Assembly: GCA_965644265.1 (NCBI GenBank)
Contig: OZ286459.1
Coordinates: 92,752,001 to 92,816,000 of the forward strand
DNA length: 64,000 bases
DNA from: Glycera tridactyla
Lineage: Eukaryota
Direction: 5' to 3'
The notes beneath the pieces are model-generated. The model searched no databases, had not been told where the DNA came from, and saw only the letters and a list, made by a program, of their open reading frames with translations. How positions within the stretch are numbered: position 1 is the stretch's first letter; every line of letters begins with the position of its first letter. Positions 1 through 64,000 of this stretch are shown one piece after another. Made by a program: the position numbers and the translations under genes.

Positions 1-48
1 CTCCAAACTTGTCACCAGTATGGATCTTCACCTTGTAATTCTTCTTAG
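1..48 (-). CDS. R40 exon A (partial, PLAT N-half, G-type)
   Basis: Acceptor tttcag at 49-51; [15 protein letters not shown]; truncated by window edge. Confidence 0.85.
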
Positions 49-3000
49 CTGAAAAAAAAGCAATGATGACGATGATAATGATGATGATGATAATGATCAT
101 AGTAAAATCATATGACAGTAAGATTTCATGGGTACATTAGTTTAAAGGTGGAACCAGAAGAGCTTGCAAGGATGCTCGTGGCCTCGCTGACTGGAAAGAG
201 TTGAATCTGACAGAATATCCTCAACTGAAATCAAATATTTATTCCTGTTAAGGCTTTATTTACAATGATGTTCTGAGGTATGTTTGTCACGCGTGTAGTT
301 ATATCCTGACCTTGTGTTGCGTGTCTGCAGTGTGAACGTAAATAAAAGTTTTTGAATCTGAATTTGAATTTGAATAGTATGGTGTGTTGATAATAGGCAA
401 AACAATGAGTGCGTACATACAATTGTACTGGCGAGAACATTCCAATGTGGACTGTATTACCTATTCGATTCAGTGTGAGTACTTACGTTCTGGTGATGTA
501 GGAGTTTCAGGTTCTTCCACTTTTGAGACATCATGTGGCTTCTTTTCCTTCTTCTCTCTCTTCAAGCTGAATGTTGGCATGGTTGGCATGGTGATAGATA
601 ATCCATGCTTGCCCTCATCATCACTAGAATCTCCATCTTTGTCTTTCTTCTCCTTTGGTGTTTTCTCCTTCTTCGCCTTGTCTTTGGCACCAAATGAGAA
701 CTTGTGTTTGGGCTTCTTGACCTTAGGTGCCTTGACGTCAAGCTCAGCTTCTGGTACCACAATATCTCCCGCCAAAACGACCTCCGGGGGTCCAGAGCAG
801 CTGAGGTCAAGCTCAATTGCCCCGTCATCCTTACTCTTGTCCAACCATCGCTGGCATGGGAATTCATAAAGGTGGCCATTTGGAATGTCTTGGATTGTTA
901 CTTTCTCGAGGTACCAGGCAGGTCCCAGTCCGGTGTCATCATGACCAATGTTTATCCTCTCAACCGGACCCACATGTGGACAGTCAACATCGAAGGAATC
1001 CACTCTGAAAAAGGAGGTTGATTGATCGATCAATGCTTAACGTCTCTACAAGCCAGGCAGGATTGTGTTGGCTTACTAACAAATTGTTTAGAATATACTT
1101 CGACTTTGAAGAAAAGATAAGATCATACAGAAATGACCCAGTAGCAACTCCACTAGAATAACCTGGCTGATGTATTAGGAATTATGGAGTCCTTATATCA
1201 AAAATGCAAATTTCTCATTACATCGCCTGGATCGCTGGACAAAAGGTGAGAAAGATCGGAAAATTTAAACAATTTGCATTTCTCACCTCGAAACCATCTA
1301 AGATTGATGTAGATAGACTTTCTTTGGCGGGCAACAGTGAGAAAAAATACGTATTGTGGTGCAGTCACAGTTTAAATTGCAAAGAACCCCAGCATATACT
1401 CACTTTCCTCTCTCGAAGTTGTTCTTCTTGTTGTCTAGTCTGTGCAGATCGGAGTCACCCTCGGGTCCGAAGAATTTGAAGAAAACATTCGCATCAGTGC
1501 CTGCTCCAAACTTGTCACCCGTGTGCACATTGACTTTGTAATTACCTGTAAAAGGCAGAATAATACATCAATTGTACGACATTGAACATTTCCATATCAG
1601 ACTGAACAAATAAGGTATATTTTTGTCTGGTTCATGATCGTCATCTCGACATAATATGAGCTATAGCTCGGTCTGATTGAGCCAGATGGTTGAAAGCCAG
1701 GTGTTCTGTCCCCTACCGGCTTCACTTGAACAAACCCTGAACATAAGATGATGGGGAATCCGAGAGATCGTTCAGTGGGAGAAACTGACAGTCCAGACAC
1801 ACCTCTAAGTATATTTCATGGACACGGTGAACCTAAAGATGGTATATCTAGATATGTAAGTTGCTGGGAGCTGTCACACCATATTTATGTACCATTTATG
1901 TGCCATTACTGGACTTCCAATGTGAGGTATCATCCTATGGTCTATTTATATAAGTACTTGATGGCATGATGTGTATCTATGATATATCCCTCTTGAATAT
2001 ATTTTCAAGATACCATGAGATTGATCGATTGATTGAGTGATAATTGATGTCTCATTAAGCCAAATGTCATGAGACACTATGGAGAGGTGATGTGTATATC
2101 TACCTGCTGGGGTGGTTGGAGATTCAGGCTCGTCCTCCTCTTTCGATGTATCATGGACCTTCTCCTTCTTCTGTCCCTTCTTCATGTGGAATGATGGCAG
2201 ATTGAAGGAGAACCTATGTTTGCTGTCATCCTCATCTTCACTCTCATCATCCTTCTCTTTCTTGTCCTTCGGCTTCTTGTCCTTCTTGCGCTTCTCGACA
2301 GATATCTTCGGCGCCTTCACATCCGGGGTTTCGACGACAATGTCGGTTCCACCCACCACGAGTTCACCAGATGCATCAATCTCCGGAGGATTTGGACAGG
2401 ACAGGTCGCATTCGACCGCACCATCCTCACGCTCTTTGTCCAACCATTTCTGGCATGGGAATTCGAACAGGTGACCTCGGTTTGTATCTTCGATGCTCAG
2501 TCTGTCGAGAAACCATGCTGGTGTGCTGCCGGAGTTGTCATGCTCGATGTGGACCTTGTAGATGGGACCGACGTCTGGGCACTTTATATGGAAATCATCA
2601 ACCCTAAAACAACAAAGAATTGACTTATTGATAAACAGTAAAACCTGCTATAGTGAAATCCTGTCCACAGTAAAATCCTGCCTACAGTGAAGAGAAAAAT
2701 CTGGCCCGAACGTTTTCTTTCAATATAATTGACCTGTATATAGTGAAATCCTGTCTACAGTGAAAAGAAAAATCTGGCCCGTGACTTTTCACTACAGACA
2801 GGTTATACTGTACTTGTGATATATGATTCACTTTCACTACCTTTCTAAACTGTAGCATAGTTGGTGACCCACATCAGCAGTGCATGATTTATAGAAAGGA
2901 AGAGCCACAAGCAGTAAATTTCTCGATACTGCTGCACACATATTGCATTGGATCTTAATGATGATCTAATTCGATCGCGAAGAGAGTGTATACTCGGATT

Positions 3001-6000
3001 ATTGGCAAGCGATGGGAAAACTGCAAACTTATTTGATTTTCTGAAATATATGTGGTTGATTTGATATCTGCAACCAGTGCATTAACACAATGATGAAAGG
3101 GTAGCACAGGTGCTTCCCATTGGTATCTTCGAAGGAATTTGTACAGGGAAATGTCAAAAAACATGATTTTCCACGGAAGAAATGACAAAATTACTTACTT
3201 TCCTCTCTCGAAGTTATCTTTGATGTTGTCCAACTTCTGCTTAGAGGAATCCCCAAGCAACCCAAAGAATGTCAAGAAGACGTTGGCATCTGTTCCAGCT
3301 CCTTCAACATCACCGGTATGGACCTTGACATGGTAGTCAGTCTCTGTAAAAGAAATATGGATCCCACTCGTGAGTTTAAGAAGCAGCATACTCTGGATAT
3401 ATTTGCATCTATTAAGATAGACATTTATGCTAAATGCTGAAATGGTTGACATTGCTAGAAATGATTGAAGTTTGTTGTCCAGAAAATCGTTATTATATTC
3501 AATTTGCCACTCGATCTGGATTAGGATGGTCCCCTATCGTGAGTTTACAACCCTAATCGCACCAAATGTATAGAAATATCTCAATAGATTGAAAATATGC
3601 CAGGATTATCTTGTAGGTATATCATAATTTTCAAAACTGTATATGATCATCCAAGTGTGTTCGATGTTCCCCATACATATTCACACTACTGGAGCTGCTC
3701 AGTTCACGGTGCCCAGTGGATAGTAGTCATGTACACATGGTCAAGTGTGGAGTAGAGGATGGATAGTTCATAAAGTAAGCATTACCTTTTGGTGTGGTTG
3801 GAGTCTTGACTTTCTTGTCTCCTCCCTTCATGCTGAACGAGGGAAGGTTGAGTGACATGCTGACCTTCTTGCCATCCTCATCATCAGATTCATCATCGTC
3901 TTTCTTCTTCTTCTCTTTGGGCCTCTTCTCCTTCTTCGCCTTGTCTTTCGAGCCAAATGAGAATTTATGTCTGGGTTTCTTCACTTTAGGTGCCTTAACG
4001 TCAATATCAGCATCGGGTATATCAACATCACTAGCAACAACGACTTCTGGTGGGCCACTCAGGTTGAGGTCAAGCTCAATGGCACCATCGTCCTTGTCCT
4101 TGGATAGCCATCGCTGGCATGGGAATGTGTAGAGTTTCGCATTTGGAATGTCCTGAATGGTGACTTTGTCAAGGTACCACGCAGGTCCAGGACCTGAGTT
4201 GTCATGTCCAATGTGCATGCGTTCAACATCACCAACATGTGGACATTTGATGTGGAATGTATCGACCCTGAGAGAGAGAAGAGGACACAAGTGTGACTAC
4301 ATGGCTAGCAGTGTGCCCAATACAATACATGTGTTTTATATAAACATTTATAGGAATATGAGATTGTACTAGAACAGGTCTCGGCTTACTTCTCAACTGG
4401 CATTTGTGATGCAGTTGATTGATTGATTGATTGATTGATCAAATATTTTTTTTTGTGAAATGCCCGGGAGGAAACTTAATTACTCACTGATCAAATGTAT
4501 AACTACCATACTGGTTTGACAAGCGGATATAATTGAAATCTTGAACCTTTACCATACAATTGAGGAATAATTGGGTGGAACTTTCATGTGCACATGCCAT
4601 GAAAAGGCACTCAGGATTAAGATTTTCTTCAAGCGGTAATATCATTATCTCCCTAGCTAAAATAGAGCTCAGCTGTCAACTTTTCGCCAGCCGAGAAACC
4701 AGTGCTGGCAAATGCCTGTGAGCACACATCCAGCACTCGGGGTCCAGCACCAAATATCTCCTGAAATGTTATCATGCTTTCCCATTGTACTTTTACTCAC
4801 TTTCCTGTTTCGAAGTTGTTCTTGATGTTATCGAGTTTATGCTGACCAGATTCACCAAGTGGACCAAAGAATTTCATGAAAACATTGGCGTCAGTTCCAG
4901 CTCCAAATTTGTCACCAGTGTAGACTTTCACCTTGTAGTTGGCATCTGAAATAAAGATTGTACTTTTTGCATGAGGTCACTTTAGAAGTATCGTGGGTGG
5001 TCCAAGATGAATAGCATGCTCCACATATAATATCTACTGACGTGCAAATGCATGCTGTTTGATATACGAGGTCAAATTAAATCAAACGATATTGGGAATA
5101 CAACAGTGAAAGGTATTATGATTTCCGTGTACATTTGGGACCACAAGTTCGACACAACTACTGCTAACACAGATCTACAGCAAGTTTAAGAGCACCTACC
5201 CCAACTCTGAATCCACCCTAATCTTGCCAATCAAGCTCAGAGAGATGTGGGAGTGATATCTCCAGGAACGAACTAGCAACTTCGTGTGGAAAAATACAAA
5301 CACTTGATCAATATAATTGTAATCAATTAAAATTCCATGCAAAAATTACCTGCATCTGGGAGACTGACATCAACTTCTTCCTCATCCTTTGATGTATCAT
5401 GAGTCTTCTCCTTCTTCTGTCCTTTCTTTAGGTGGAACGATGGTAGATTGAACGAGAATCCGTGTCGCTTGCCATCACTCTCATCTTCCGATTCGTCATC
5501 TTTCTCTTTCTTATCCTTTGGTTTCTTCTCTTTCTTTCCTAATTCTATTTTTCCGGAGGGAAGTTTGGGAGCTTTCAGCTCTCCTCCTTCACCGTCCAGG
5601 ACAATATCACCCCCAAGGATAATGTCTGGTAGATCAGAGCAGACTAAGTCACACGAAAGTTCGCCATCGCCCTCATCTTTGGACAGCCACTTCTGACATG
5701 GGAAGTTATATGAATGTCCACTTTGGAGATCTGTTATTATGACTTTGTCGAGGTACCAGTTTGGTCCGGGTCCAGAGTTGTCATGCTCGATGCACAAACG
5801 ATCAGGTGGACCAACACACGGACACTCCAACTCGAACTCATCCACACTGCAAGGTCAAACCAGAAGAGGAAACTGTTAGTACCTGCTTTTCACCGAACCA
5901 ACTAGACAGACATATAAACAGACAGAAAGAAGGTGAGACACACGATGGGTTGCACAGGTGAGTAGGGAAGACGGTNNNNNNNNNNNNNNNNNNNNNNNNN

Positions 6001-9000
6001 NNNNNNNNNNNNNNNNNNNNNNNNNNNNNNNNNNNNNNNNNNNNNNNNNNNNNNNNNNNNNNNNNNNNNNNNNNNNNNNNNNNNNNNNNNNNNNNNNNNN
6101 NNNNNNNNNNNNNNNNNNNNNNNNNNNNNNNNTGATGAATGGTCGAGAGAAAACATGGACGGATGGATGGATGGATGGATGAATGGGTGGTTGGATGAAT
6201 AGGTGTATGAATGGCTGGATGGCTGGATGGATGAGTGGGTGGGTGTATGAATGTATGAATGCATGCATGCATGGCCGACCGATGGAATGCTGCAGATATA
6301 TAGGGTGCGATAGACACACACTGTTTGAAGCCAAACAAATACAATCTGCAGATTATTTGAAACTAAACCGTGTTGGCTAAGGCAAATGGATGATCAAACT
6401 GTCGAAAATGTAAGACAAATGCTATGCGGTGTAAAGCTTGAATACGAACTCAACAGATTAAGAAAGATTATCTTGGAAGACTGTGCACCACAAAACAGTG
6501 CAAATCATTCAGGTAGCCCGATTCACCATTGTCAATAGACTCAATATTGGAAAGCTGTTCTAAGTCATCATGCCAGCGATTTTAGGAAGCTGCTCCAATT
6601 TGAGTCATCATACAAGATAGTGGAACGGACTACAGGCCGGCACAGTCAAGGGCATAGAAAAAGAGCATGACATAAAGGGTATGGAGTGCAGTGAAGTTGA
6701 GGCCAGTCATGAAAATGGCTGCCACAAAGTGAGGTCAGCGTTTGTTGTGTTATATTAAAACTTCGTTTAATATATATCATGAATTGTGTGATCATAATTC
6801 ATGATATATATTACATATTTATTAAACTATCCGATCAGGCCACAGAATCACAATATGATTAAACGGTTAATGAATCATGCCATTTCAAACGACTGAAATA
6901 CTCCAATGAACCTATCATTCCAGTCAGCAATCCTGGCTTCTTCTATATAGACTTGATGTCTAGTAACTGTTACAGAGATCGCAGCCAAATGCTGAGTGAT
7001 ATGGTTTACTTGAATAGAGTGAATAAAGATATGAAAACGTGTTTTACTACTTATTGGAAAGAGTATAAGAAGGTATGGGATAAGCTTCAGATTCGAATAC
7101 TGGGACACCAGTTGCAAAAAGCAAAAATATAACCACTACCACTCCATGGTATGAAGATGAAATCGCCTACCTGTGTGTGAATGAATGCATGCAAAAATCC
7201 TAATCCAGTACTGAATGAGATTAGATTAAAATAAATCTGAAAGAGAGCTGTACAGATTTTGACATGATGGAACCATATCAAAATAGGGGAGGGTTTCAGA
7301 TGGTTAGTACCCTCAAGAGTATATGCGTCAAGTGATTTGTCCAAGTTTGTGTCATTTATATTGGGTATGAAATGTCGCCAACTTACTCTCCAGCTTCGAA
7401 GTTCTTCTTGCCGTTGTCCAGCTTCTGCTTGCCAGAGTCGCCGAACGGTCCGTAGAATTTGGTAAATACATTGGCGTTTGTACCTGCTCCGATTTTATCA
7501 CCAGTATAGACGCTCATCTTATATTTAGTAGCTGCAATAGAGACAATCATCCACCCATCAGTTAGATATCAGTTCTCAAGTTTGGGATGTGTTTATTAGC
7601 CTATATCTATTTATTTATTCACCTATTGGAGCAGCGGTCTAAAATGATACTGGTTCGGTTTGTTCTGGTTTAACGACACGTCAGCTCCATTTGTGCTATA
7701 TTGCGACGCCCATGCAATGGGCATGGGCGGAATCATTCGAGACTCCTGCTCCTGGGTCCCCAACAGAAGGCGAATATCTATGAAATTTACAGACACCCAC
7801 GGTCTCATTTCTAGTAAGGAGCAAGCAGTATCTGTACAATAGCTCAGGGTGAGCTTCTTATTTTCATATAAGCTGTTTTGATTTCATTTACGTGGGTAAC
7901 TGAATGTCAATAGATATATATAGAAAAATATGGAATGGAAATATTTCTTCAATATATCAGAAGAAACAGATGGTAGTATCTAATATGTGGCTATTTCAAT
8001 AATTCGACTATCGCTTATTATCCTCCCACTTATCCTGAATATTCTAATTTGTGATAGCAAACCCTCCAAGGTAGAAAATGGCAGTATATTTCAAGAAGAT
8101 TTTTGACTGATCTACACACTTGAGGAACACCATATAGAAGCAATATCTCCCCAACGAAAAAAAAACAGTACTGATGATTCTTCGATACAGCAAACTCCTC
8201 TCTTAATTTTGAATACCAGAACAGTTTTACTATGTCAAATCTACATGAAACTGTGACACGGAGAGAAGCGATGAGAATTCTGGTTTAAACTAGAGGTGCA
8301 TATAACTTCGATTTCGAAAACTTACAGGGTCTAAGAGCGAAGGAATCATCTTCTTCATCCTTGGAAGTGTCATGTACTTTCTTATCATCCTTCTTCATGC
8401 CCTTCTTGAGATGGAAGGACGGCAAGTTGAAAGAGAAATCATGACGTTTACGATCACCATCATCATCCGATTCTTCATCCTTCTCTTTGGGTTCCTTTTC
8501 CTTCTTGTGCTTGCCGAATGAGAACTTGGGTGCCTTCACGTTGGGTCCCTGTACGACCACCTCGGTCTCTCCGATAACGATCTCACCGCCAACATCCGGT
8601 GGGTGAGGACAGGCGAGGTCAAGAGCGATAGCTCCGTCGTCCTTGTCCTTGGCCAGCCAGCGGTTGACGGGGAACTCGTAGAGATGACCTCGCGGCAGAT
8701 CCTCGATGGTCAGTTTGTCCAGGTACCAGGCAGGTCCAGGACCTGAGTTGTCGTGCTCAATGTGTGCCAACTGGATAGGACCAACGTAGCTTCCGGTCAG
8801 GTCGAACTCATCCACCCTGCAAACACAGGACAAATTGATTGATTGATTGATTGATTATCATTCAACGTCCTATCGACACCGTACAGGACAAAGCATGTAG
8901 CTCATATGCACTGTAATATAGTCAAACCTCTCTATGAAGACCGCCTCCTGTCGCATCAAATAGTGACCTTTATGTGGAGGTGGTCTTTATAGTGAAGTCA

Positions 9001-13363: not shown

Positions 13364-13418
<55 letters not shown>

Positions 13419-36593: not shown

Positions 36594-36624
<31 letters not shown>

Positions 36625-48600: not shown

Positions 48601-48797
48601 TCATGCTCGATGTGACATCCGCCGATAGGACCAACACATGGCAGTTCGAAGTCGAACTTATCAGTCCTGGAAAGTGCAATATATTCATATCAGTGTATCA
48701 GAGTTCTGTTCGGGCATTCCAAAATCTGTCTGACATCCATTATGAGCCTCATGAATCTGTCTTCTCATGATGAATCTGTGTGGCAGAGTAGGTATGG

Positions 48798-48872
<75 letters not shown>

Positions 48873-54800: not shown

Positions 54801-57800
54801 CCTGCAGAAACACAGACACCCACTGATCTGCAGAGACAACTCGAGGAGCAGATTTGCACCCCTATAAAATACACAGACATCACTTACACAATCAAGCATA
54901 TGTTTTCAACTCAAAAGACAACTTCCACTAGCCGTGCTGGTTCTTAATGAAGGTTATTTGTTAAGCATCTATGTGTCTGGTTGAGGCAAACCATTGTGTC
55001 TCAATGTGCGCCGATTGAGTTTGCCTACCTGGTGTTGGTACATCTGGAGTCTTGACCTTGATGTCACCCTCAGCTTTGACCTTAGGCTCCTTGTGTCCAC
55101 CTTTCATACTGAATGATGGCAATGTCACAGATGGGAGGTTGATATCAAAACCTCGACGACGGCCTTCATCATCAGATTCTTCCTCTTCCTTCTTTTTTGG
55201 TTCTCTCTCCTTCTTTTTCTTGTCTTTCGACCCAAATGAAAATTTCTTCTTGGGTTTCTTGACCTTTGGTCCTGTCAAATCAATACTAACACCTGGTGCC
55301 TTTGCATCAATGTCAAGATCTCCGTCAAAATCAAGATCAAATTCACCACCGAGGGAAAGATCACGAGATATTTCACCATCGTCCTTATCTTTGTCCAACC
55401 ATCGCTGACATGGGAAGACATACTTCTTCTTGTGCTCAATGTCATCGATGACAATCTTGTCAAGGAACCAGGCAGGTCCAGGTCCTGTGTTGTCATGCTC
55501 GATGTTGACACGCTCCACTGGTCCAACAAATGGACAATCAATCCCAAATGTATCCACCCTGGAAGGAGATATAATGAGGTCAGAACTAACATAGCAGTGT
55601 TAACAAAGAGCATAGATCATATTGACTGATTTCATTCATGATGTTGATGTGTATGCCTCATGCATGTACCTTTGGAATTGGTGCAGTCACATAATTGATA
55701 TGCCAGGACCAATCGATAACATTCAAAACCAAAGCATTGATGTGTGTAGTGATAATTACATTTCAGTGAGCAAACATTTCGAAGATGATCAAGTGCCCAT
55801 GACTGAGAAAATACCGAATTAAAAACAATTTTTCATCAGGACAACAAATTGATGAATGCAGGATAGGGCATAGATTACTTACTTTCCAGTCTCGAAGTTG
55901 TTCTTGGCATTGTCAAGCTTGTGTAGTCCGGAATCACCAAGGTCACCAAAGAACTTCAGGAACACATTGGCATCAGTACCCGAACCGAATTTGTCACCAG
56001 TATGTACATGTACTTTGTAGTTGCCATCTGCAAAAAACACAAGATTTGTGTCGAATGTTGAGCCATGAATACATAAGGATGTTGTCAATTCGAAGTAGAC
56101 ATAGGCGTTTTGCTCTTGAGTGGCTAATGACGACAGATACGTGATAACTGACATGAGAATGATTTGCATTTCCAATCAAAAAGTTCATTGATAGTTGTGT
56201 ATTGTTCAGCTTCTCACATCAATATCGGATTACCACGCAATAATTTATATCACATCATCAAGAGATATTTGCCACTGCAAATCATGTCTTCAGACATCAG
56301 GACATGTCAATAATGAACTTTATGGGATGAAATGTCACTGCAAATCATGTCTTCAGACATCAGGACATGTCAATAATGAACTTTATGGGATGAAATGTCA
56401 CTGAAATTTGTATGAAATGAAGTGATGTTGATGAGACATTGACCTCAGCTGACAACATTGACCTACCTGCTTTTGGTACATCTGGAGTCTTGACCTTGAG
56501 CTCACCCTCAGCTTTGACTTTAGGTTCTTTATGTCCTCCTTTCATACTGAATGATGGCAGTGACATAGATGGAAGGTTGATATCAAAGCCTCGACGACGG
56601 CCTTCATCATCAGAGTCCTCGTCCTCTTTTTTCTTCTTTGGTTCTTTCTCCTTCTTTTTCTTGTCTTTTGATCCAAATGAGAACTTCTTCTTTGGTTTCT
56701 TGACTTTGGGACCTTTCAACTCAATGTCAACCTCGGGACCTTCAGCATCAATGTCAATGTCACCGAGATCTAAATCGAATGCTCCACCAAGAGATCGATC
56801 TCGACTGATTTCTCCATCATCCTTCTTCTTGTCAAACCATCGTTGACAGGGGAACACATATTTCTTTTTATTCTCGAGATCGTCGATGATGACTTGCTCC
56901 AGGTACCAGGCAGGTCCAGCTCCCGAATTATCATGCTCAATCTGAACACGATCAACTGGACCAACATTCGGGCAGTTGATATTAAACGTATCCTTCCTGT
57001 GGAAAGATTCCCCATATTTGATGAAAATTTCAAATATGCAAAAACTAGGAAGTTGCCATGTTACTTCGATAATCCCTTACACACAACATCAATAATCTAT
57101 ATACTCGACCAAATTAAGAGGGTATCACATCACTTGTTAAAATTATGCTCATCTTCGTGGTATTCGAAAGGTTTTTTGTAGTTTGTTTGAGGTTTAACGG
57201 CATGTATCAACCTTAGGGTTATGTATGCAGTGTGTTCCTGGATAATGAAAGCTAGATGTTCGCAGACATCTCTCTCGCATACCCTGAACATAAGATGATG
57301 GAGAACCTGTAAGGTTTTCAAGTGGGAGTAGCTGACAGTTCAGACACACCTCTACCTGATCTGAACATACATAATAAACCTATGGTGGTGAAGAATTGAT
57401 ATGAATTGCATTGAAACACCATGAAAGTTCTTATCGCTGTTCACCTAAATGGTGACACTGAGTATGAATCACACTCACCTTCCAGTTTCAAAGTTATTTT
57501 TCGCGTTGTCAAGCTTGTATTTCCCTGAATCACCCAAGGGTCCAAAGAACGTCATGAAGACATTGGCGTCAGTGCCAGACCCGAATTTATCTCCAGTGTC
57601 GACATGTACCTTGTAGTTCCCTGAAAGAAGAAATGATCTATATCTGACAAAGCGTTCACTTTGCTATCATTATTTCTATGCATGTGGTCATACCCGGTGC
57701 ATGAGATATTCCATTAATCCTTGCACTTTCATAACTGAAAAAGTGGAAACTTTCACTGACACCGCTCATGATGTAAATTGTGTGAGCTTAATTCACACCC

Positions 57801-60800
57801 ATTGCCAGCTCTCTGATAAGAGTATTTTTGAATATTTCTTTACAACACCATCTGGTTCCATTACTGAAGTGATGATAACTTTTAGAACGCGACCCTTCTC
57901 CATCTTGGGGATGCATATTATTGGTTACTTCAATATCAATAGCTCTTTCTGTGTGAGAAGAAATTACATTACTTCGGTCAGCGACATTGATGGAATCTTA
58001 CTTTGCCTTCCCAGACATTGGAAAGAACATCACAAAAATTTTCAAATTTCATCCAAAATAGTGGTTTTCAGTGTCCTTGAGTGAACAGCCCTAGTTATAT
58101 TCAAGAGGAGTGGAAGTCTCCCAGCCATATAAGAGGGAGCGATTTTCAAGGATGTAACTTCGGATAACCAAATCAGTAATTATGCCAATTGTCTAGAGTA
58201 ATGAAGACAGTATTTGCAATGATCAAATGGGAGGATTCTGAATGTATTTGCGTAGAAGAATCTGGCTAAGAAAGTAATTATCACTCCAAAATTGTGAAGG
58301 TCTCCAGGTTTTGAATTACCTTTCTTGCCAGAGGCTTTGGGGATGTCCAAACCGGCATCAGCTTTGACCTTTCCTTTCTTGTCTCCACCTTTCATACTGA
58401 ATGGTGGTAGTGAGAAGTGGGGCATATTGATATCAAAATCACCCTTTCGACCTTTTGGTGATTTGATCTTCGGCCCTTGAACAACGACCTCAGTTTCTCC
58501 AATAACGATTTCACCACCAATGTCTGGTGGGTTGGGGCATGATAGGTCAAGATCGATTGCACCATCGCCCTTGTTCTTTGACAACCAACGATTACACGGG
58601 AATTCAAATACATTGCTGTTTGGAACATCTTCTATTGTCAGCTTGTCCAGCTTCCAGTCAGGTCCAGAACCTGAGTTGTCATGTTCGATATGGACCCGGT
58701 CGATAGCCGGACCAACACAGGGGACTTTAAAGTCAAATTCATCCACCCTGAAAACGGAAAAAGTGCAAAAACGATTAGCAATTGTTCAGACACACACGAT
58801 TTATTTGTTCAAATTATCTGCAAATCTGACGCTGTGCATTCAGTATATGTGAAGTCATAATATATGTGACTGACCAATATTTCTGGCATATACAAATTAC
58901 CACAGAAGAGTACATTTTCTTCGCCAGGGACAGTGGGTTCGATATCAGTACATACAAATATTGAAGGAGATATGCATAACATGAATGAATATTATATTTT
59001 TATGAATTGATCAGTATATGCCTGTAAGATACTTCCTGCAGGTAAAATTATCTTTACTTACTTTCCAGCTTCAAAGTTGTTCCTGATGTTGTCCAGCTTG
59101 AGTTTATCAGAACCCCCGAACATACCAAAGAAGGTGAGGAAAACGTTCGCATCAGTTCCAGCATCAGGTTCATCTGCTGTGTGAACCTTGACCTTATACT
59201 CGGTATCTGAAAAAGAAAGTTGATTAAAAAATATAACAAGCCAATTGGATGCTTCAATAACTGTCTAATTATAACGCATTAATGATTTGAATCAAAATTG
59301 AATAAATGTTCTTTCTGTGGTGAAATTAAGTTGCCATCGTTTTTTTGGCCCATGATCACAATCAGTTGAATTGATCATTAGGAGTAGTTGTGAGTAGATG
59401 ACAGCATTTCCCCAGTCATAGGATCCTCGAGAGATTCAAGAGCCATCCTATCAAATCAAGGTAAATGTTCATATTCTAATAATTGAAATCTTACCTGGCC
59501 TGGTTGGTGGCAGGAAGTCCATGTCAGCAGAATCTCCTTTGCCTTTCTTCTTAAGCTTGAATGATGGTATTGATATATGCGGTAGGTTGATATCGAATCC
59601 ATGGCGCCGACCTTCATCATCTGACTCGTCATCTTTCTCTTTCTTCTCTTTGGGTTTCCTCTCCTTCTTATGCCGGTCTAATGAGAACTTTGGTCCTTTG
59701 AATTTTGGTCCCTTGAAATCGGGACCTTTGAAGTTGAAGTCAACATCAAAGTCAAAAGATGGTGGATCGGGACATGATAGATCAAAATCGATCTCACCAT
59801 CACCTTTGTCCTTCGACAGCCATTTGTGGCAGGGGAACTCGTATACATGTCCTCGTGGAACATCCTCGATGGTGACTTTGTCCATTTTCCAGTCTGGTGC
59901 AGCACCAGAGTTGTCATGTTCGATGTGACATCCGCCGATAGGACCAACACATGGGAGCTCAAAGTCAAATTCATCAAGTCTGAAAGGTGCATAATGCATT
60001 GTCAAGTATCTCATTATATATATCCTATCATGCAAATACTAAAGAATTACACAAAATTGAGTGATGAGACTAGTTTGCATTTAACGACATATATATGACA
60101 TATATTTGAGACAATGTATGCTATGTGGATGCTACACAATTGAAAAGAGGTTGATAAAAGCGATTGAAATCAATATTGTAGTTTGTGGGTAGAACATATA
60201 AGACAACTTTTGGTTGAAGGTCAGCATTGACACGAAACAGATTAGAAATTTGTCGAAAGTTAGGGTTGTCTTCACATCAGCCAGTCTGCCCATTGCAAGC
60301 CATTCTGTATAGCCTAAGTCACCCACTCTGTATAGCCTCTGTCCAGTTCATCTTCAGTCTGGCCTACCGCCCAATCTACTGAATTGGGTTTAAAAGACAT
60401 TTTCAGCTGATTACCCGTGATTATGTGAACACAGAATGGGCCTGTGATTTTTATGCTTCAGAAAATTAGCAGAGGGAACTCCCTATGAATCGCCCCCTCC
60501 CATTCTGAATCTTTGGGAAACTGATTCAGTGTCAATATACACAGTTATACGAAGCTGAGCAAATGCAGACAGGAATGACCACGTGTACTTACTTTCCAGC
60601 TTCAAAGTTATCCTTCAAGTTGTCTAACTTCAACTTGCCAGAGTCACCCAGAAGACCAAAGAATGTGAGAAAGACATTGGCATCTGTTCCTGCATCTGGT
60701 TCATCAGCTGTTTGTACTTTCACTTTGTACTTTGTATCTGGAAAAGAAAGAGTTCACCAATCTAAAAAATCTATTTCACATGATATTACAAGCTGACAAA

Positions 60801-63665
60801 GGAATGGTATTAACTGCAGAATAAAAAATTACTGATTCTCCTTGAAAAGGTAGGACATGTTTCTGTTTATGGCCAGTATGGGCTAGCTTTCATAAGCCAT
60901 TCAACATTGCGATGACGATCTTTAGGATTCCATGTCCTAGATCATGTCTCCAAATCAGTATTGAAGACGTGTAGCAATTGAAAGAGTGAAACAGCAGTGT
61001 TAGTGATTCTGATACATACATGAACAATCAGATGTATCTTAAGTACTGTTGAGACACACCATGATAGATATGGAACGCATATTGCTGAAAATCCACTCAA
61101 CATACCTGGTCTAGGATAATCATGAAGGTCGAACTCAGCAGAGGCATCGATGTCTCCTTTTGGTTTCTTTCCTCGGCCCTTGAAGCCCCATGATGGCATG
61201 GAGATGTGTGGCATATTGATGTCAAAACCTCTTCTGTGGTCCTCATCGTCAGATTCCTCATCTTTCTCTTTCTTTTCTTTGGGTTTCTTCTGTTTCCTAT
61301 CCCAGCCGAACTTGGGGCCCTTGAAATGAGGTCCTTTGAGACCGAAATCTGCATCAAAGTCGAATGATGGAGGATCTGGGCATGATAGATCAAAATCGAT
61401 TGCACCATCGTCCTTGTCCTTTGACAACCATTTGAGACAGGGGAACTCATACACATGTCCTCGTGGAACATCTTCAATGGTAACCTTGTCCAGTTTCCAG
61501 TCTGGGGCAGCTCCAGAGTTGTCATGCTCGATGTGACATCCACTGATAGGACCAACACATGGCAGCTTGAAGTCGAATTTGTCAACCCTGAAAGAGGATT
61601 CATTTATGATGAGAAATCATCTTGCTGAATGAAGATATCCATATGAAGGACACGCTTCTAAACAGCTGATTTGAAAAAAATGTGGACATCTGTGCATGCC
61701 ACAAAACATTACACATATCCAAGATCATGGTATCTGGTGCAATTATTATGTCACTTTAGTGTTCAATCTTTAGCTTTCAAGTAGGCAAACTGATATCCAT
61801 TACAACTATGCCCTAGTGGGAACATTATGGCAGGAATTGTGAATCATGTTGCAGATTTGTATTTTTTTCCCTGAAAATTTCCTTAGATTCATTGACAAAA
61901 TCCACCGAGATGTGTCTACTTACTTTCCTGGCTCGAAGTCATCCTTCAGAAGATTGTCCAACTTCAACTTGCCAGAGTCACCAAGCAGACCAAAGAATGT
62001 GAGGAAGACATTGGCATCAGTTCCAGCATCTGGTTCGTCAGCTGTATGTACTTTAACTTTGTATTTCGTGTCTGCAAAAATGAAACCTCAGCATCATTTA
62101 TATGGTGATGATCAATGATAAGATGGCATTGCCGATTCTATATTAATGTATTTGCTACAAAACACTACAAATGTTGGCCAATAATTACCATTCAGACTGT
62201 TGCGATCCTTGGACATTGACTGTCAACCTATGTGTAAAGTCAGGCTGTAGCATATTCTACAGAATAGATGCACTGTCAGATTGGCAATCATCTACGAGTA
62301 GAGTGTGATTCGAGAAAGAAATTCTCAGTCTAAGTTCGCCAATTCTCAGATAGTGGTATTGCATTAAGAGATACCTGTACCTAACAATCGATGCCGAAAA
62401 TATAGCAATGGTGTAATGGGATCACCTGGTAGTGATTTGTGAAGAGACATGGGCACACATTCACGTGGGATTGTTATCTTTGGCTTGAATAAGGAGGGGC
62501 TTTTTGATAAAGCTTACAATGATATTCATCAGAATATGGCATTTATAGCTTTATTTGTATGAGCAGCACATTTCATAGTTCGATGGAGAAATAGTATATT
62601 GGAAGGTCATGATTTATGGACTCGGTAGTCCGTTTTGAGAATAGAGAGAGTGCTGCCCTGTCATGGCAAAAACGTCTCTTGGATGCTGACACTAGCAGGA
62701 AAAGGAAGTGTTTGCACATGCTCCATGGGGAAGCCTGATGATTAAAGCCTGGCGACGCAAAATTCACCTTAGATTCATTACTGGTAAAATCTGATAGTTA
62801 TAAAAATGAAGCAAAAATACATACCTGGTCTCGGGTGATCACCAAGATCAAGCTCAGCAGAAGCATCAAGATCTCCTTTTGGTTTCTTGCCTCGACCCTT
62901 GAAACCCCATGATGGCATTGAGAACTTGGGGCCCTTGAAGTGAGGTCCTTTCAAGCCAAAATCAGCATCAAAGTCGAATGATGGTGGATCTGGGCATGAT
63001 AGATCAAAATCAATTTCACCATCATCTTTGTCCTTCGACAACCACTTGAGACATGGGAACTCATACAAGTGTCCTCGTGGAACATCTTCGATGGTGACCT
63101 TGTCCAGTTTCCAGTCTGGTGCAGCACCAGAATTGTCATGCTCAATGTGACATCCATCAATAGGACCAACACATGGCAGCTCGAAGTCAAATTTATCGGT
63201 CCTGAAAGAAAGTATATCATCAATGGCAAATGTTGCAACAGTTAACAAGGTGAGTAATGCAAAACAATAGATTTGACAATAGTTGATAGCATTTTCATGA
63301 ACATGTGCCAAGACCGCCTCTCAATTGCCCATACCTCTGCTGCCTGGAATACTGACTCCAAGCTGCACAACGACAGATAGAAAACAAACAAGATCATTTT
63401 CATTCAGGAAATGTTCATGTACTGCAATGTTGAGGTCCCCTGTATTTCTAATAGACAGAATAGGAGGTCAAGTGATTGCTCGTGACTTGCTTTAATGATG
63501 TAGAAGTGATCACTTACTTTCCAGGCTTGAAGTTGTCCTTGAGGAGATTGTCCAACTTCAACTTCCCAGAGTCACCAAGAAGACCAAAGAATGTGAGGAA
63601 GACATTGGCATCAGTCCCAGCATCTGGCTCATCAGCGGTGTGGACTTTAATCTTGTATTCTGTAT
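1..63665 (-). CDS. LOXHD1: Internal part (79 exons, ~7,870 aa, open at both ends) of a giant tandem PLAT/LH2-repeat protein, LOXHD1-like
   Basis: Strict A/B exon alternation over the whole window, all GT-AG, phases chain into one frame; PLAT motifs GTDANV, NFExG, HDNSG, PxW, FPCxxW. Symbol means 'LOXHD1-like architecture' only; orthology is not established. Confidence 0.85.
63..97. repeat. Degenerate (ATG)n microsatellite
   Basis: atgatgacgatgataatgatgatgatgataatgat. Confidence 0.7.
487..1004 (-). CDS. R39 exon B (PLAT C-half + linker)
   Basis: AG/GT, 518 nt; [31 protein letters not shown]. Confidence 0.9.
1404..1545 (-). CDS. R39 exon A (G-type)
   Basis: AG/GT, 142 nt; [26 protein letters not shown]. 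Confidence 0.9.
1735..1807. repeat. 73-bp dispersed repeat fragment (copy at 57282-57354; partial at 10190-10210)
   Basis: Shared ccctgaacataagatgatgg...agtggga...ctgacagt.cagacacacctcta. Confidence 0.75.
2104..2603 (-). CDS. R38 exon B
   Basis: AG/GT, 500 nt; [29 protein letters not shown]. Confidence 0.9.
2636..2810. mobile_element. MITE-like element (CAGT termini, Tc1/mariner-pogo-like)
   Basis: Termini cagtaaaacctg / caggttatactg (11 of 12 inverted match), TA at right flank, internal direct repeats (gtgaaatcctgtc, aaaaatctggccc), non-coding. Confidence 0.7.
3199..3343 (-). CDS. R38 exon A (mixed type)
   Basis: AG/GT, 145 nt; [27 protein letters not shown]. Confidence 0.9.
3786..4267 (-). 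CDS. R37 exon B
   Basis: AG/GT, 482 nt; [23 protein letters not shown]. Confidence 0.9.
4801..4945 (-). CDS. R37 exon A (G-type)
   Basis: AG/GT, 145 nt; [22 protein letters not shown]. Confidence 0.9.
5350..5846 (-). CDS. R36 exon B
   Basis: AG/GT, 497 nt; [22 protein letters not shown]. Confidence 0.9.
5976..6132. other. Assembly gap (intronic)
   Basis: N run. Confidence 0.99.
6158..6270. repeat. Degenerate (TGGA/TGAA)n microsatellite beside gap
   Basis: ggatggatggatggatggatgaatgg... Confidence 0.75.
7387..7531 (-). CDS. R36 exon A (G-type)
   Basis: AG/GT, 145 nt; [27 protein letters not shown]. Confidence 0.9.
8326..8816 (-). CDS. R35 exon B
   Basis: AG/GT, 491 nt; [22 protein letters not shown]. 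Confidence 0.9.
8919..9094. mobile_element. MITE copy 1 (degenerate), inverted relative to copy 2
   Basis: ta|tagtcaaacct...aggttcgactc|ta; internal tcgcatcaaa is the reverse complement of tttgatgcga in copy 2. Confidence 0.75.
9355..9532. mobile_element. MITE copy 2 (intact TIRs, TA target-site duplication)
   Basis: Perfect 11-bp TIR cagtcgaacct / aggttcgactg flanked by TA at 9353-54 and 9533-34; 178 bp, non-coding. Confidence 0.85.
9675..9819 (-). CDS. R35 exon A (G-type)
   Basis: AG/GT, 145 nt; [27 protein letters not shown]. Confidence 0.9.
10287..10780 (-). CDS. R34 exon B
   Basis: AG/GT, 494 nt; [22 protein letters not shown]. Confidence 0.9.
11228..11375 (-). CDS. R34 exon A (G-type)
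   Basis: AG/GT, 148 nt (or 145 nt from the second AG of a CAGCAG acceptor, end 11372); [22 protein letters not shown]. Confidence 0.88.
11996..12495 (-). CDS. R33 exon B
   Basis: AG/GT, 500 nt; [23 protein letters not shown]. Confidence 0.9.
12812..12992. other. Assembly gap (intronic)
   Basis: N run. Confidence 0.99.
13056..13200 (-). CDS. R33 exon A (G-type)
   Basis: AG/GT, 145 nt; [22 protein letters not shown]. Confidence 0.9.
13365..13416. repeat. (CAAT)n microsatellite, ~13 units
   Basis: Direct reading; shorter CAAT/ATTG runs at ~4416-4440, ~8836-8856 and ~36596-36620. Confidence 0.9.
13751..14172 (-). CDS. R32 exon B (last of P block)
   Basis: AG/GT, 422 nt; [33 protein letters not shown]. 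Confidence 0.9.
14560..14707 (-). CDS. R32 exon A (P-type)
   Basis: AG/GT, 148 nt; [22 protein letters not shown]. Confidence 0.9.
15426..15913 (-). CDS. R31 exon B (P-type, long linker)
   Basis: AG/GT, 488 nt; [23 protein letters not shown]. Confidence 0.9.
16463..16610 (-). CDS. R31 exon A (P-type)
   Basis: AG/GT, 148 nt; [22 protein letters not shown]. Confidence 0.9.
16963..17339 (-). CDS. R30 exon B (P-type, short linker)
   Basis: AG/GT, 377 nt; [27 protein letters not shown]. Confidence 0.9.
17793..17940 (-). CDS. R30 exon A (P-type)
   Basis: AG/GT, 148 nt; [22 protein letters not shown]. Confidence 0.9.
18469..18845 (-). CDS. R29 exon B (P-type, short)
   Basis: AG/GT, 377 nt; [14 protein letters not shown]. 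Confidence 0.9.
19165..19312 (-). CDS. R29 exon A (P-type)
   Basis: AG/GT, 148 nt; [15 protein letters not shown]. Confidence 0.9.
19829..20205 (-). CDS. R28 exon B (P-type, short)
   Basis: AG/GT, 377 nt; [14 protein letters not shown]. Confidence 0.9.
20546..20693 (-). CDS. R28 exon A (P-type)
   Basis: AG/GT, 148 nt; [15 protein letters not shown]. Confidence 0.9.
21186..21562 (-). CDS. R27 exon B (P-type, short)
   Basis: AG/GT, 377 nt; [19 protein letters not shown]. Confidence 0.9.
21902..22049 (-). CDS. R27 exon A (P-type)
   Basis: AG/GT, 148 nt; [15 protein letters not shown]. Confidence 0.9.
22652..23028 (-). CDS. R26 exon B (P-type, short)
   Basis: AG/GT, 377 nt; PDWKPE..DHPRP. 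Confidence 0.9.
23286..23433 (-). CDS. R26 exon A (P-type)
   Basis: AG/GT, 148 nt; [15 protein letters not shown]. Confidence 0.9.
23805..24328 (-). CDS. R25 exon B (G-type PLAT, P-type linker tail)
   Basis: AG/GT, 524 nt; [22 protein letters not shown]. Confidence 0.9.
24775..24919 (-). CDS. R25 exon A (G-type)
   Basis: AG/GT, 145 nt; [22 protein letters not shown]. Confidence 0.9.
25473..25987 (-). CDS. R24 exon B (G-type)
   Basis: AG/GT, 515 nt; [17 protein letters not shown]. Confidence 0.9.
26279..26423 (-). CDS. R24 exon A (G-type)
   Basis: AG/GT, 145 nt; [22 protein letters not shown]. Confidence 0.9.
27163..27686 (-). CDS. R23 exon B (G-type)
   Basis: AG/GT, 524 nt; [17 protein letters not shown]. 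Confidence 0.9.
28220..28364 (-). CDS. R23 exon A (G-type)
   Basis: AG/GT, 145 nt; [22 protein letters not shown]. Confidence 0.9.
29053..29555 (-). CDS. R22 exon B (G-type)
   Basis: AG/GT, 503 nt; [17 protein letters not shown]. Confidence 0.9.
29925..30069 (-). CDS. R22 exon A (G-type)
   Basis: AG/GT, 145 nt; [22 protein letters not shown]. Confidence 0.9.
30741..31144 (-). CDS. R21 exon B (G-type, short linker)
   Basis: AG/GT, 404 nt; [29 protein letters not shown]. Confidence 0.9.
31558..31702 (-). CDS. R21 exon A (G-type)
   Basis: AG/GT, 145 nt; [22 protein letters not shown]. Confidence 0.9.
32057..32583 (-). CDS. R20 exon B (G-type)
   Basis: AG/GT, 527 nt; [17 protein letters not shown]. 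Confidence 0.9.
32966..33110 (-). CDS. R20 exon A (G-type)
   Basis: AG/GT, 145 nt; [22 protein letters not shown]. Confidence 0.9.
33493..33671. repeat. 90-bp tandem duplication (2 copies)
   Basis: agatgttttt at 33501 and 33591; near-identical units. Confidence 0.9.
33801..34294 (-). CDS. R19 exon B (G-type)
   Basis: AG/GT, 494 nt; [22 protein letters not shown]. Confidence 0.9.
34930..35074 (-). CDS. R19 exon A (G-type)
   Basis: AG/GT, 145 nt; [22 protein letters not shown]. Confidence 0.9.
35369..35425. repeat. Degenerate (CAT/CAC)n microsatellite
   Basis: catcatcatcaccatcgccatcacc... Confidence 0.7.
35529..36031 (-). CDS. R18 exon B (G-type)
   Basis: AG/GT, 503 nt; [17 protein letters not shown]. 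Confidence 0.9.
36443..36587 (-). CDS. R18 exon A (G-type)
   Basis: AG/GT, 145 nt; [22 protein letters not shown]. Confidence 0.9.
36879..37369 (-). CDS. R17 exon B (G-type)
   Basis: AG/GT, 491 nt; [17 protein letters not shown]. Confidence 0.9.
38309..38453 (-). CDS. R17 exon A (G-type)
   Basis: AG/GT, 145 nt; [30 protein letters not shown]. Confidence 0.9.
38704..38803. repeat. 25-bp minisatellite x4 (aagccacggctgcggaaaaggtgtg)
   Basis: Four head-to-tail copies, no spacers, small variants in copies 3 and 4. Confidence 0.9.
38960..39137. other. Assembly gap (intronic)
   Basis: N run. Confidence 0.99.
39568..39986 (-). CDS. R16 exon B (last of P block)
   Basis: AG/GT, 419 nt; [33 protein letters not shown]. 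Confidence 0.9.
40097..40506. other. Assembly gap (intronic)
   Basis: N run. Confidence 0.99.
40571..40715 (-). CDS. R16 exon A (P-like)
   Basis: AG/GT, 145 nt; [22 protein letters not shown]. Confidence 0.9.
41181..41563 (-). CDS. R15 exon B (P-type, short)
   Basis: AG/GT, 383 nt; PDWKPE..LPSRP. Confidence 0.9.
42037..42181 (-). CDS. R15 exon A (P-type)
   Basis: AG/GT, 145 nt; [22 protein letters not shown]. Confidence 0.9.
42774..43252 (-). CDS. R14 exon B (P-type, long)
   Basis: AG/GT, 479 nt; PDWKPE..DYPRP. Confidence 0.9.
43549..43696 (-). CDS. R14 exon A (P-type)
   Basis: AG/GT, 148 nt; [15 protein letters not shown]. Confidence 0.9.
44116..44492 (-). CDS. R13 exon B (P-type, short)
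   Basis: AG/GT, 377 nt; [21 protein letters not shown]. Confidence 0.9.
44848..44995 (-). CDS. R13 exon A (P-type)
   Basis: AG/GT, 148 nt; [22 protein letters not shown]. Confidence 0.9.
45475..45851 (-). CDS. R12 exon B (P-type, short)
   Basis: AG/GT, 377 nt; [21 protein letters not shown]. Confidence 0.9.
46301..46448 (-). CDS. R12 exon A (P-type)
   Basis: AG/GT, 148 nt; [21 protein letters not shown]. Confidence 0.9.
47057..47433 (-). CDS. R11 exon B (P-type, short)
   Basis: AG/GT, 377 nt; [14 protein letters not shown]. Confidence 0.9.
47702..47849 (-). CDS. R11 exon A (P-type)
   Basis: AG/GT, 148 nt; [15 protein letters not shown]. Confidence 0.9.
48290..48666 (-). CDS. R10 exon B (P-type, short)
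   Basis: AG/GT, 377 nt; [14 protein letters not shown]. Confidence 0.9.
48800..48882. repeat. (GT)n microsatellite, ~41 units
   Basis: Direct reading, one g>a interruption. Confidence 0.95.
49315..49459 (-). CDS. R10 exon A (P-type)
   Basis: AG/GT, 145 nt; [15 protein letters not shown]. Confidence 0.9.
49813..50294 (-). CDS. R9 exon B (P-type, long)
   Basis: AG/GT, 482 nt; [17 protein letters not shown]. Confidence 0.9.
50688..50832 (-). CDS. R9 exon A (P-type)
   Basis: AG/GT, 145 nt; [22 protein letters not shown]. Confidence 0.9.
51280..51755 (-). CDS. R8 exon B (G-type PLAT, P-type linker tail)
   Basis: AG/GT, 476 nt; [22 protein letters not shown]. Confidence 0.9.
52401..52545 (-). 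CDS. R8 exon A (G-type)
   Basis: AG/GT, 145 nt; [22 protein letters not shown]. Confidence 0.9.
53101..53624 (-). CDS. R7 exon B (G-type)
   Basis: AG/GT, 524 nt; [17 protein letters not shown]. Confidence 0.9.
54198..54342 (-). CDS. R7 exon A (G-type)
   Basis: AG/GT, 145 nt; [22 protein letters not shown]. Confidence 0.9.
55029..55558 (-). CDS. R6 exon B (G-type)
   Basis: AG/GT, 530 nt; [17 protein letters not shown]. Confidence 0.9.
55883..56027 (-). CDS. R6 exon A (G-type)
   Basis: AG/GT, 145 nt; [22 protein letters not shown]. Confidence 0.9.
56273..56403. repeat. 63-bp tandem duplication (2 copies)
   Basis: cactg at 56273, 56336 and 56399; identical units. Confidence 0.9.
56467..56996 (-). 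CDS. R5 exon B (G-type)
   Basis: AG/GT, 530 nt; [22 protein letters not shown]. Confidence 0.9.
57282..57354. repeat. 73-bp dispersed repeat fragment (second copy)
   Basis: Same-orientation match to 1735-1807. Confidence 0.75.
57479..57620 (-). CDS. R5 exon A (G-type)
   Basis: AG/GT, 142 nt; [21 protein letters not shown]. Confidence 0.9.
58320..58747 (-). CDS. R4 exon B (last of P block)
   Basis: AG/GT, 428 nt; [31 protein letters not shown]. Confidence 0.9.
59062..59206 (-). CDS. R4 exon A (P-type)
   Basis: AG/GT, 145 nt; [22 protein letters not shown]. Confidence 0.9.
59495..59979 (-). CDS. R3 exon B (P-type, long)
   Basis: AG/GT, 485 nt; [22 protein letters not shown]. Confidence 0.9.
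60593..60737 (-). CDS. R3 exon A (P-type)
   Basis: AG/GT, 145 nt; [22 protein letters not shown]. Confidence 0.9.
61106..61587 (-). CDS. R2 exon B (P-type, long)
   Basis: AG/GT, 482 nt; [17 protein letters not shown]. Confidence 0.9.
61924..62071 (-). CDS. R2 exon A (P-type)
   Basis: AG/GT, 148 nt; [15 protein letters not shown]. Confidence 0.9.
62825..63201 (-). CDS. R1 exon B (P-type, short)
   Basis: AG/GT, 377 nt; [17 protein letters not shown]. Confidence 0.9.
63518..63665 (-). CDS. R1 exon A (P-type)
   Basis: AG/GT, 148 nt; [22 protein letters not shown]. Confidence 0.9.
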
Positions 63666-64000
63666 CTGCAATAGAATTGTTAATTGAAGCTATCAACACT
63701 GAAATCAACAAAATATAATATGGTGTGGACCTCGAAGCAAATTAAAATCAAATGTTAAAGAAAACATGATATCAACCACATAATTTCTACTCCTCCACCA
63801 TCATTGCATGCTGTATGTGTGAGGTCTGGTGTGGCCATCAAAGTTTGGCGGTATGCCCAGCTTTATTCGCTGGTGATATATACTTCGGGGGCACTGACGA
63901 TTGAAGTCAACATGAATGTGGTCTGTACATTCGATCTGATACATACTGCAAGCACATCCAGCTGATCGACAACAGGTTGATCACTCTCCATCTGAACTCA

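Follow-up and report, generated by a model that had tools for sequence, protein, structure and literature searches.

The 64,000-nucleotide window analysed here (Glycera tridactyla, contig OZ286459.1; G000:C1:92752001-92816000) is filled by one gene on the minus strand. The assembly comprises 2.04 Gb of eukaryotic DNA. Within the window the gene consists of 39 tandem two-exon units, each encoding one PLAT/LH2 domain (hereafter PLAT) and one linker of 58–109 amino acids (aa). We consider it likely, with a probability of about 0.7, that this expressed giant gene represents a new architecture of PLAT domains and AHNAK-type repeats, and that the linker and the repeats of AHNAK and AHNAK2 form one repeat family, probably through shared ancestry. 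A hybrid of this kind had been proposed in a sequence-only reading of the window and is borne out: the relation of the linkers to AHNAK is specific and reciprocal, and PLAT is present in every unit. PLAT domains and AHNAK-type repeats are known kinds, and it is their domain architecture that is new. No long PLAT-bearing protein with such linkers was found among 1.84 billion representative proteins searched with a linker profile, and the literature search found no paper joining 'AHNAK' and 'PLAT domain' and nothing on the interleaved architecture.

The units, 1.4–1.9 kb each, were delimited by motif scans combined with splice-site logic; a further unit may lie inside a gap filled with N. Exon A (142–148 nucleotides, nt) starts at cag/AT in phase 1, ends at AA/GTAAGT in phase 2 and encodes the N-terminal half of PLAT. 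Exon B (377–530 nt), ending at CCAG/GT in phase 1, carries the C-terminal PLAT half and the linker in one open frame. The summed length of exons A and B is a multiple of three in all 39 pairs, with canonical AG/GT sites and phases 1-2-1. PLAT was recognized as Pfam family PF01477 on the exon-B open reading frames (ORFs), with E values of 1e-8 to 1e-11, and its sequence matches in the PDB include the PLAT domains of Rab6IP1, polycystin-1 and lipoxygenase. The gene segment and an example of each exon are as follows.

1..64000, minus strand: inner part of the giant gene; holds 39 of the roughly 65 units, with 7,851 aa encoded by 23,553 nt
52401..52545, minus strand: exon A of unit 8, acceptor in phase 1 and donor in phase 2, both borders transcript-confirmed
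53101..53624, minus strand: exon B of unit 7, C-terminal PLAT half and whole linker, unbroken in spliced contigs of four runs

Expression and the predicted exon structure are supported by public transcript data. In eight public runs from two studies, about one-quarter of the sampled words of the segment 51200-57100 is present, roughly the expectation for exons only. In the contigs of four runs (two studies) exons are covered and introns are at zero depth, and the joints 51755/52401, 52545/53101 and 56027/56467 lie exactly at the predicted borders; their ends are CT..AC, which reads GT..AG in the direction of the gene. Exon B7 (53101-53624) is unbroken in the transcript contigs over its full length and exon B8 over most of it, and therefore the linkers belong to the mature RNA. 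Another joint, from 54341 to 56466, seen in three of the four runs, would drop unit 6 in frame (exon A 55883-56027, exon B 55029-55558); with 31 letters on one side, it may be a repeat mis-join rather than alternative splicing. Three more joints (51700>54198, 54235>55090 and 56997>54199) were rejected as splicing, their short sides and non-splice ends marking them as mis-joins between similar repeats.

The linkers run from 487/488 to 62999/63201, where 487 is the last base of exon B39 and 63201 the first base of exon B1. They are listed below in the direction of transcription.

62826..62999, minus strand: linker 1, short, 58 aa
61107..61385, minus strand: linker 2, medium with charged insert, 93 aa
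59496..59777, minus strand: linker 3, medium, 94 aa
58321..58542, minus strand: linker 4, variant without charged insert, 74 aa
56468..56794, minus strand: linker 5, long, 109 aa; first row of the linker alignment, folded with AlphaFold2 (AF2)
55030..55356, minus strand: linker 6, long, 109 aa
53102..53422, minus strand: linker 7, long, 107 aa; within a transcript contig
51281..51553, minus strand: linker 8, medium, 91 aa; up to 29.5 bits with fish AHNAK-type queries
49814..50092, minus strand: linker 9, medium, 93 aa
48291..48464, minus strand: linker 10, short, 58 aa
47058..47231, minus strand: linker 11, short, 58 aa
45476..45649, minus strand: linker 12, short, 58 aa
44117..44290, minus strand: linker 13, short, 58 aa
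42775..43050, minus strand: linker 14, medium, 92 aa
41182..41361, minus strand: linker 15, short, 60 aa
39569..39784, minus strand: linker 16, variant, 72 aa
36880..37167, minus strand: linker 17, long, 96 aa
35530..35829, minus strand: linker 18, long, 100 aa
33802..34092, minus strand: linker 19, long, 97 aa
32058..32381, minus strand: linker 20, long, 108 aa
30742..30942, minus strand: linker 21, long type without charged insert, 67 aa
29054..29353, minus strand: linker 22, long, 100 aa
27164..27484, minus strand: linker 23, long, 107 aa
25474..25785, minus strand: linker 24, long, 104 aa; carries two of the five strings discussed below
23806..24126, minus strand: linker 25, long, 107 aa; top match of the genome to the vertebrate AHNAK unit profile (E 2.9e-5, 34.6 bits; 35.5 bits when the profile was run on the window linkers)
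22653..22826, minus strand: linker 26, short, 58 aa
21187..21360, minus strand: linker 27, short, 58 aa
19830..20003, minus strand: linker 28, short, 58 aa
18470..18643, minus strand: linker 29, short, 58 aa
16964..17137, minus strand: linker 30, short, 58 aa
15427..15711, minus strand: linker 31, medium, 95 aa
13752..13970, minus strand: linker 32, variant, 73 aa
11997..12290, minus strand: linker 33, divergent 3'-side type, 98 aa
10288..10578, minus strand: linker 34, divergent 3'-side type, 97 aa
8327..8614, minus strand: linker 35, divergent 3'-side type, 96 aa
5351..5644, minus strand: linker 36, divergent 3'-side type, 98 aa
3787..4065, minus strand: linker 37, divergent 3'-side type, 93 aa
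2105..2401, minus strand: linker 38, divergent 3'-side type, 99 aa
488..802, minus strand: linker 39, divergent 3'-side type, 105 aa

The count of 39 linkers given by the sequence-only reading was correct, and all five strings that it had quoted from them are present: the first in units 1, 10, 11, 15, 27, 28 and 29, the second and third in unit 24, the fourth in units 9 and 31, and KPKGDIDAS in units 2, 8, 11 and 25. K accounts for 17% of linker residues, D for 13%, and P and G for 10% each. Long linkers comprise, in order, an alternating acidic/hydrophobic run, two further segments of which the first begins with A or G, an acidic block with SDDE and a stretch ending in hydrophobic-D; short linkers retain one conserved stretch of 32 residues. 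AF2 modelling of linker 5 with a 37-row alignment gave a predicted local distance difference test score (pLDDT) of 56 and a predicted template modelling score (pTM) of 0.11, without secondary structure, and by this prediction the linkers are probably disordered. Along the array, near-identical short-linker blocks (units 1, 10-13, 15 and 26-30; for example 16964-23433 and 44116-49459) alternate with strongly diverged long-linker blocks, a pattern suggesting that within an old array one unit type was recently amplified or underwent gene conversion.

The relation to AHNAK was examined with two profiles, one of 37 linkers (A2) and one of 17 vertebrate AHNAK units (A3); the AHNAK comparison set comprised sharks, teleosts, a lamprey, a caecilian and a mole, and included no human sequence. 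A2 returned only 51 matches at E <= 0.001 from the 1.84 billion representative proteins, and nearly all of them are AHNAK, AHNAK2 or AHNAK-like. The two top matches, P0003 (E 4.9e-67) and P0004 (E 3e-50), are invertebrate tandem arrays. The named matches include AHNAK of Mustelus (1.7e-42), Liparis (1.8e-28), Scyliorhinus and Oreochromis, an 'AHNAK nucleoprotein' of Schistosoma (P0006, 1.2e-32), AHNAK2 of Condylura (3.6e-19) and the AHNAK-like proteins of Petromyzon (6e-18) and Geotrypetes. In a local classification of 52 sequences, 46 matched A3 at E < 1e-5 and 19 carried an AHNAK-type PDZ domain. A word-indexed search with one linker gave two matches under its length window, one being a catfish AHNAK fragment. 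Periaxin, also put forward in the sequence-only reading, was absent among the names of the 20 A2 matches looked up, and no periaxin sequence was compared.

Given such a composition, the matches might be an artefact, any low-complexity sequence rich in K, D, G and P resembling AHNAK equally well; the bias terms reported by HMMER for the AHNAK matches are indeed large. For each AHNAK, 100 global shuffles, 100 local shuffles of 20 residues and the reversed sequence were scored as controls with the linker profile hidden Markov model (HMM). Real AHNAKs scored 69–160 bits and the shuffled or reversed sequences at most 10.5 bits, far below the real matches at matched composition. The reverse direction agrees: with A3, 36 of the 39 window linkers score above the best of 3,900 shuffles, and with eight vertebrate AHNAK-type queries (five checked by name) 44–49 of 52 linkers lie above the 99th percentile of shuffled linkers, single linkers scoring a median of 9–16 bits and a maximum of 29.5. 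Proteins rich in K and E did not flood the A2 match list either. An artefact of composition is thus very improbable, and the resemblance to AHNAK, as the sequence-only reading had supposed, goes beyond composition. That reading had also quoted AHNAK 10-13-mers; the exact strings were not found in the non-human AHNAKs, in which the cores KGPKFKMP, PKISMPD, LKGPKVKGD, KGPKVK, MPSFG, PKFSMP, GPEVDI and KGDVDVS are present.

The likeness has a definite internal order. The profile alignments are colinear, with two anchors whose order and approximate spacing are shared by linkers and AHNAK units. Anchor 1 is (D/E)-hydrophobic-x-hydrophobic-LKGPK-hydrophobic-K, reading (P)E-hydrophobic-D-hydrophobic-x-LKGPK-hydrophobic-K in the alignments. 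Anchor 2, about 30 residues further on, is (K/R)GGF-hydrophobic-x-(M/L)P-x-hydrophobic-x-(M/L)PSF-x-hydrophobic-KG, reading EG-x-(K/R)GGF-x-hydrophobic-P-x-hydrophobic-x-MPSFG-hydrophobic-KG in the alignments. In AHNAK and AHNAK2, as in the linkers, an acidic/hydrophobic alternation leads into LKGPK-hydrophobic-K and is followed some 30 residues later by GGF..MP...MPSFG-hydrophobic-KG. Between the anchors, AHNAK has further D-hydrophobic-x-hydrophobic-K-x-P heptads, and the worm gene a polybasic, acidic (SDDE) and Arg cassette. Comparison of A2 with A3 by hhalign gave 93% probability (E 3e-7, 65 columns).

Several observations weigh against a common repeat family. The score of a single stretch against vertebrate AHNAK is modest (8–23 bits), and the large totals are not independent evidence, because they sum one modest match over many copies. 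Similarity is limited to two short motifs, of about 11 and 20 residues, with a 30-residue spacer unlike that of AHNAK. Probabilities given by hhalign are calibrated on globular domains, and no Pfam model covers the linker or the AHNAK repeat (linkers and candidate 5' ORFs scanned). An ESM-Atlas feature search placed chordate clusters nearest, including 'AHNK protein (Fragment)' at 0.77–0.81, which is a lead only. The gene itself differs from AHNAK in having two exons per unit, with transcript-confirmed introns, PLAT between all repeats and the polybasic/acidic spacer. A fish AHNAK-type PDZ query against the whole genome gave a best E value of 2.96, on another chromosome, in a search that a PDZ split over small exons could escape.

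These points bear on the possibility that linkers and AHNAK repeats reached the same short motifs independently, as flexible, charged, beta-prone sub-membrane spacers. Spacer, exon structure and flanking domains all differ between the two, and a repeat protein encoded on C29 of the same genome (described below) has a related KFKLPGF..KGRGPKGDVDV motif and little else in common, indicating that such motifs recur. Convergence would, on the other side, have to account for two motifs in the same order at similar spacing, for a profile so specific that its 51 matches among 1.84 billion proteins are nearly all AHNAK-type, and for a search of the 2.04-Gb genome in six frames with A3, in which the ten matches at E <= 1 were all linkers of this gene. 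PLAT-less invertebrate arrays, moreover, score high to both sides: their profile (A4) aligned with the linkers at 98% (E 5e-13) and with A3 at 95% in hhalign. The evidence leans to ancestry; convergence, which we regard as unlikely, keeps its share of weight because the per-unit signal is small and motif-centred.

The invertebrate arrays P0003 and P0004 are the closest relatives of the linkers. Their repeat shares the whole cassette, consisting of VEVKAPKVK, a basic and Ser/acidic spacer, and then RRGFDIHLPKVSLPKFGGKGKVEGDVD; the likeness to the linkers includes RRGFDIHLPKVSLPKFGGKGK. Against the vertebrate unit profile A3 they score 117–171 bits, their shuffles reaching at most 14.7. At the level of sequence, P0003 and P0004 bridge the linkers and the vertebrate AHNAK units. 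Both are uncharacterised and differ from the worm gene in that no PLAT was detected in them with a local PLAT HMM, built from the 39 units; P0003 lies on a metagenome contig as a single 6.4-kb ORF without interruption. None of the long A2 matches contained PLAT by the same HMM.

A further observation concerns P0028 of Mesorhabditis spiculigera (5,419 aa), which has an N-terminal FERM domain and matches A2 at E 1.5e-8 and the P0003/P0004 cassette profile at 234 bits; no match was obtained with the vertebrate AHNAK unit profile. The cassette may therefore occur beside other membrane-cytoskeleton domains.

Since the nearest relatives lack PLAT, the cassette might have been captured recently from a P0003-type array in this worm lineage only and co-amplified with PLAT, which would make the gene a young oddity. 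Consistent with this, linker-profile matches in the worm's own 2.04-Gb genome are confined to C1:92749341-92850988 on the minus strand, with no second cassette-bearing locus detected by this profile, and matches elsewhere that combine PLAT and linker are only short, exon-sized fragments from few samples (P0009, P0014, P0027, P0042 and P0048). A recent origin is opposed by the strong differences between units, in PLAT and linker alike, and by saturated synonymous sites (proportion of synonymous differences, pS, 0.55–0.8) between paralogues and against a related species, which indicate that the array is old. We consider recent capture rather unlikely.

The related animal is represented by a 2.6-kb contig (L038; ENA ERZ23486739 scaffold_32333, a metagenome, also GCA_013332675.1 JAAUYI010141238.1) with the same B-A-B exon layout and about 79% nt identity. 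Because it carries exons B, A and B of the same gene type, the architecture of PLAT plus linker is not private to this assembly. Between this contig and the best-matching units, synonymous sites are near saturation, as given above, and the proportion of nonsynonymous differences (pN) is 0.11–0.14 for the better-conserved linker and 0.12–0.13 for the PLAT half; the second linker of the contig is more diverged (pN 0.23–0.26). Across 153 comparisons between divergent paralogous units, linkers show a pN of 0.30 and PLAT one of 0.24, with pS of 0.75. Judging by these substitutions, the linker sequence itself is under purifying selection and is not a passive string, being about as constrained as the PLAT fold.

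AHNAK and the worm gene are both giant, rich in K, D, P and G and low in predicted order. AHNAK is a sub-membrane scaffold with a PDZ domain at its N-terminus and with repeats that abut directly within a single giant exon (PMC8833689), and has been linked to dysferlin and membrane repair (PMC2923515). Strictly speaking, the worm gene does not belong to the AHNAK family, because no PDZ domain was found and its repeats neither lie in one giant exon nor abut; its AHNAK-type repeats are arranged in a new way. Pfam gave no PDZ in the three candidate 5' ORFs scanned, the true 5' end of the gene being undefined.

Among multi-PLAT proteins, LOXHD1 of hair-cell stereocilia has 15 PLAT domains. The worm gene likewise encodes a tandem PLAT/LH2 array, of 64-65 units, and is set apart from LOXHD1 by some 65 domains instead of 15 and by long, conserved linkers of AHNAK type. 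The effector domain of MARCKS is a polybasic stretch with an embedded FSF/Ser motif. The polybasic FSF/Ser stretch of the worm linker recalls it, and by analogy suggests an electrostatic membrane contact that phosphorylation could switch.

PLAT domains are peripheral beta-sandwiches that bind membranes or partners. In the explanation that we favour, a repeat family shared with AHNAK, every unit encodes a PLAT/LH2 beta-sandwich and then a conserved, probably disordered spacer of 58–120 residues, and this spacer would fall into one family with the central AHNAK and AHNAK2 repeats of vertebrates and with those of PLAT-less invertebrate AHNAK-like proteins. One ancestral PLAT and one AHNAK-type repeat may have been joined and then amplified as a two-exon block. 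The product could be a cytoplasmic, membrane-apposed multivalent scaffold, in which flexible charged linkers would hold apart some 65 weak contacts of PLAT with membrane or partners. The polybasic FSFGSK stretch could add electrostatic membrane contact, phosphorylation at SDDE and Ser sites could switch this contact, and the conserved RRGFDIN-hydrophobic-P..PSF..KG motif might dock a partner common to AHNAK.

Two of the largest vertebrate proteins consist mostly of the central AHNAK repeats, and we know of no solved structure of these repeats and of no agreed origin or molecular role. The worm gene presents this repeat type outside vertebrates, constrained like a folded domain and with one membrane-binding domain for each repeat, and so offers a natural experiment. 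One unit of PLAT plus linker is small enough to be expressed and tested for membrane binding, a phosphorylation switch and partners, which the 600-kDa AHNAK is not. The gene also adds an extreme multi-PLAT architecture of about 65 domains. As a tentative history, possible at this stage, AHNAK-type repeats may be an old bilaterian module predating vertebrate AHNAK; the latter would have arisen by addition of a PDZ domain to a PLAT-less array, and the worm gene would have kept, or independently built, the repeat-PLAT pairing, which would point to the inner membrane face as the original workplace of the repeat.

The repeat gene on C29 (G000:C29:45736097-45746827, plus strand; L033/L034) is a 3,577-residue one-exon open frame with tandem repeats of about 88 aa (GSPKGGKKFKLPDFNLPDIHFKGRGPKGDVDVEGGADVELPEGEVEVEG..KKFKLPGFHIKGRGPQGEIV), and gives this genome another AHNAK-like repeat gene, one that lacks PLAT. 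Its repeats are less AHNAK-like than the PLAT linkers (hhalign probability to AHNAK units of 57% against 93%). It was rejected as a source or paralogue of the linkers, being weakly related to them (17.6 bits with A2, hhalign probability of 36%). The frame ends in VIVAIDFGTTYSGYAF, which may be HSPA12-like; Pfam gave nothing for it.

In the segment 51200-57100, transcript contigs from two organisms under different labels (A and B) share the same 30-odd single-letter differences from the assembly. Because these differences are common to both, A and B appear to be very closely similar and to differ a little from the sequenced individual.

The four N gaps of the window are all intronic, and the alternation of exons A and B and the frame are kept across each.

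5976-6132: N gap between exons A and B of unit 36
12812-12992: N gap between exons A and B of unit 33
38960-39137: N gap between units 16 and 17
40097-40506: N gap between exons A and B of unit 16

With the fetched flanks, 64-65 units were counted over about 108 kb, from about C1:92744200 to about 92852000, and the whole gene is estimated to exceed 12,000 codons. Upstream of the first PLAT unit, at a distance of about 2.3 kb, lies an open frame of 263 codons rich in K, E and S (G000:C1:92854219-92855007, minus strand; L016:8219-9007), for which Pfam reported no family at cut-off and which may be a 5' exon of the PLAT gene. Downstream of the last PLAT unit (G000:C1:92732001-92744200, minus strand; L019/L020) there are more open frames, without PLAT or linker motifs, one of which reads GTFGKVDYVFLVGVGGSVPNF.

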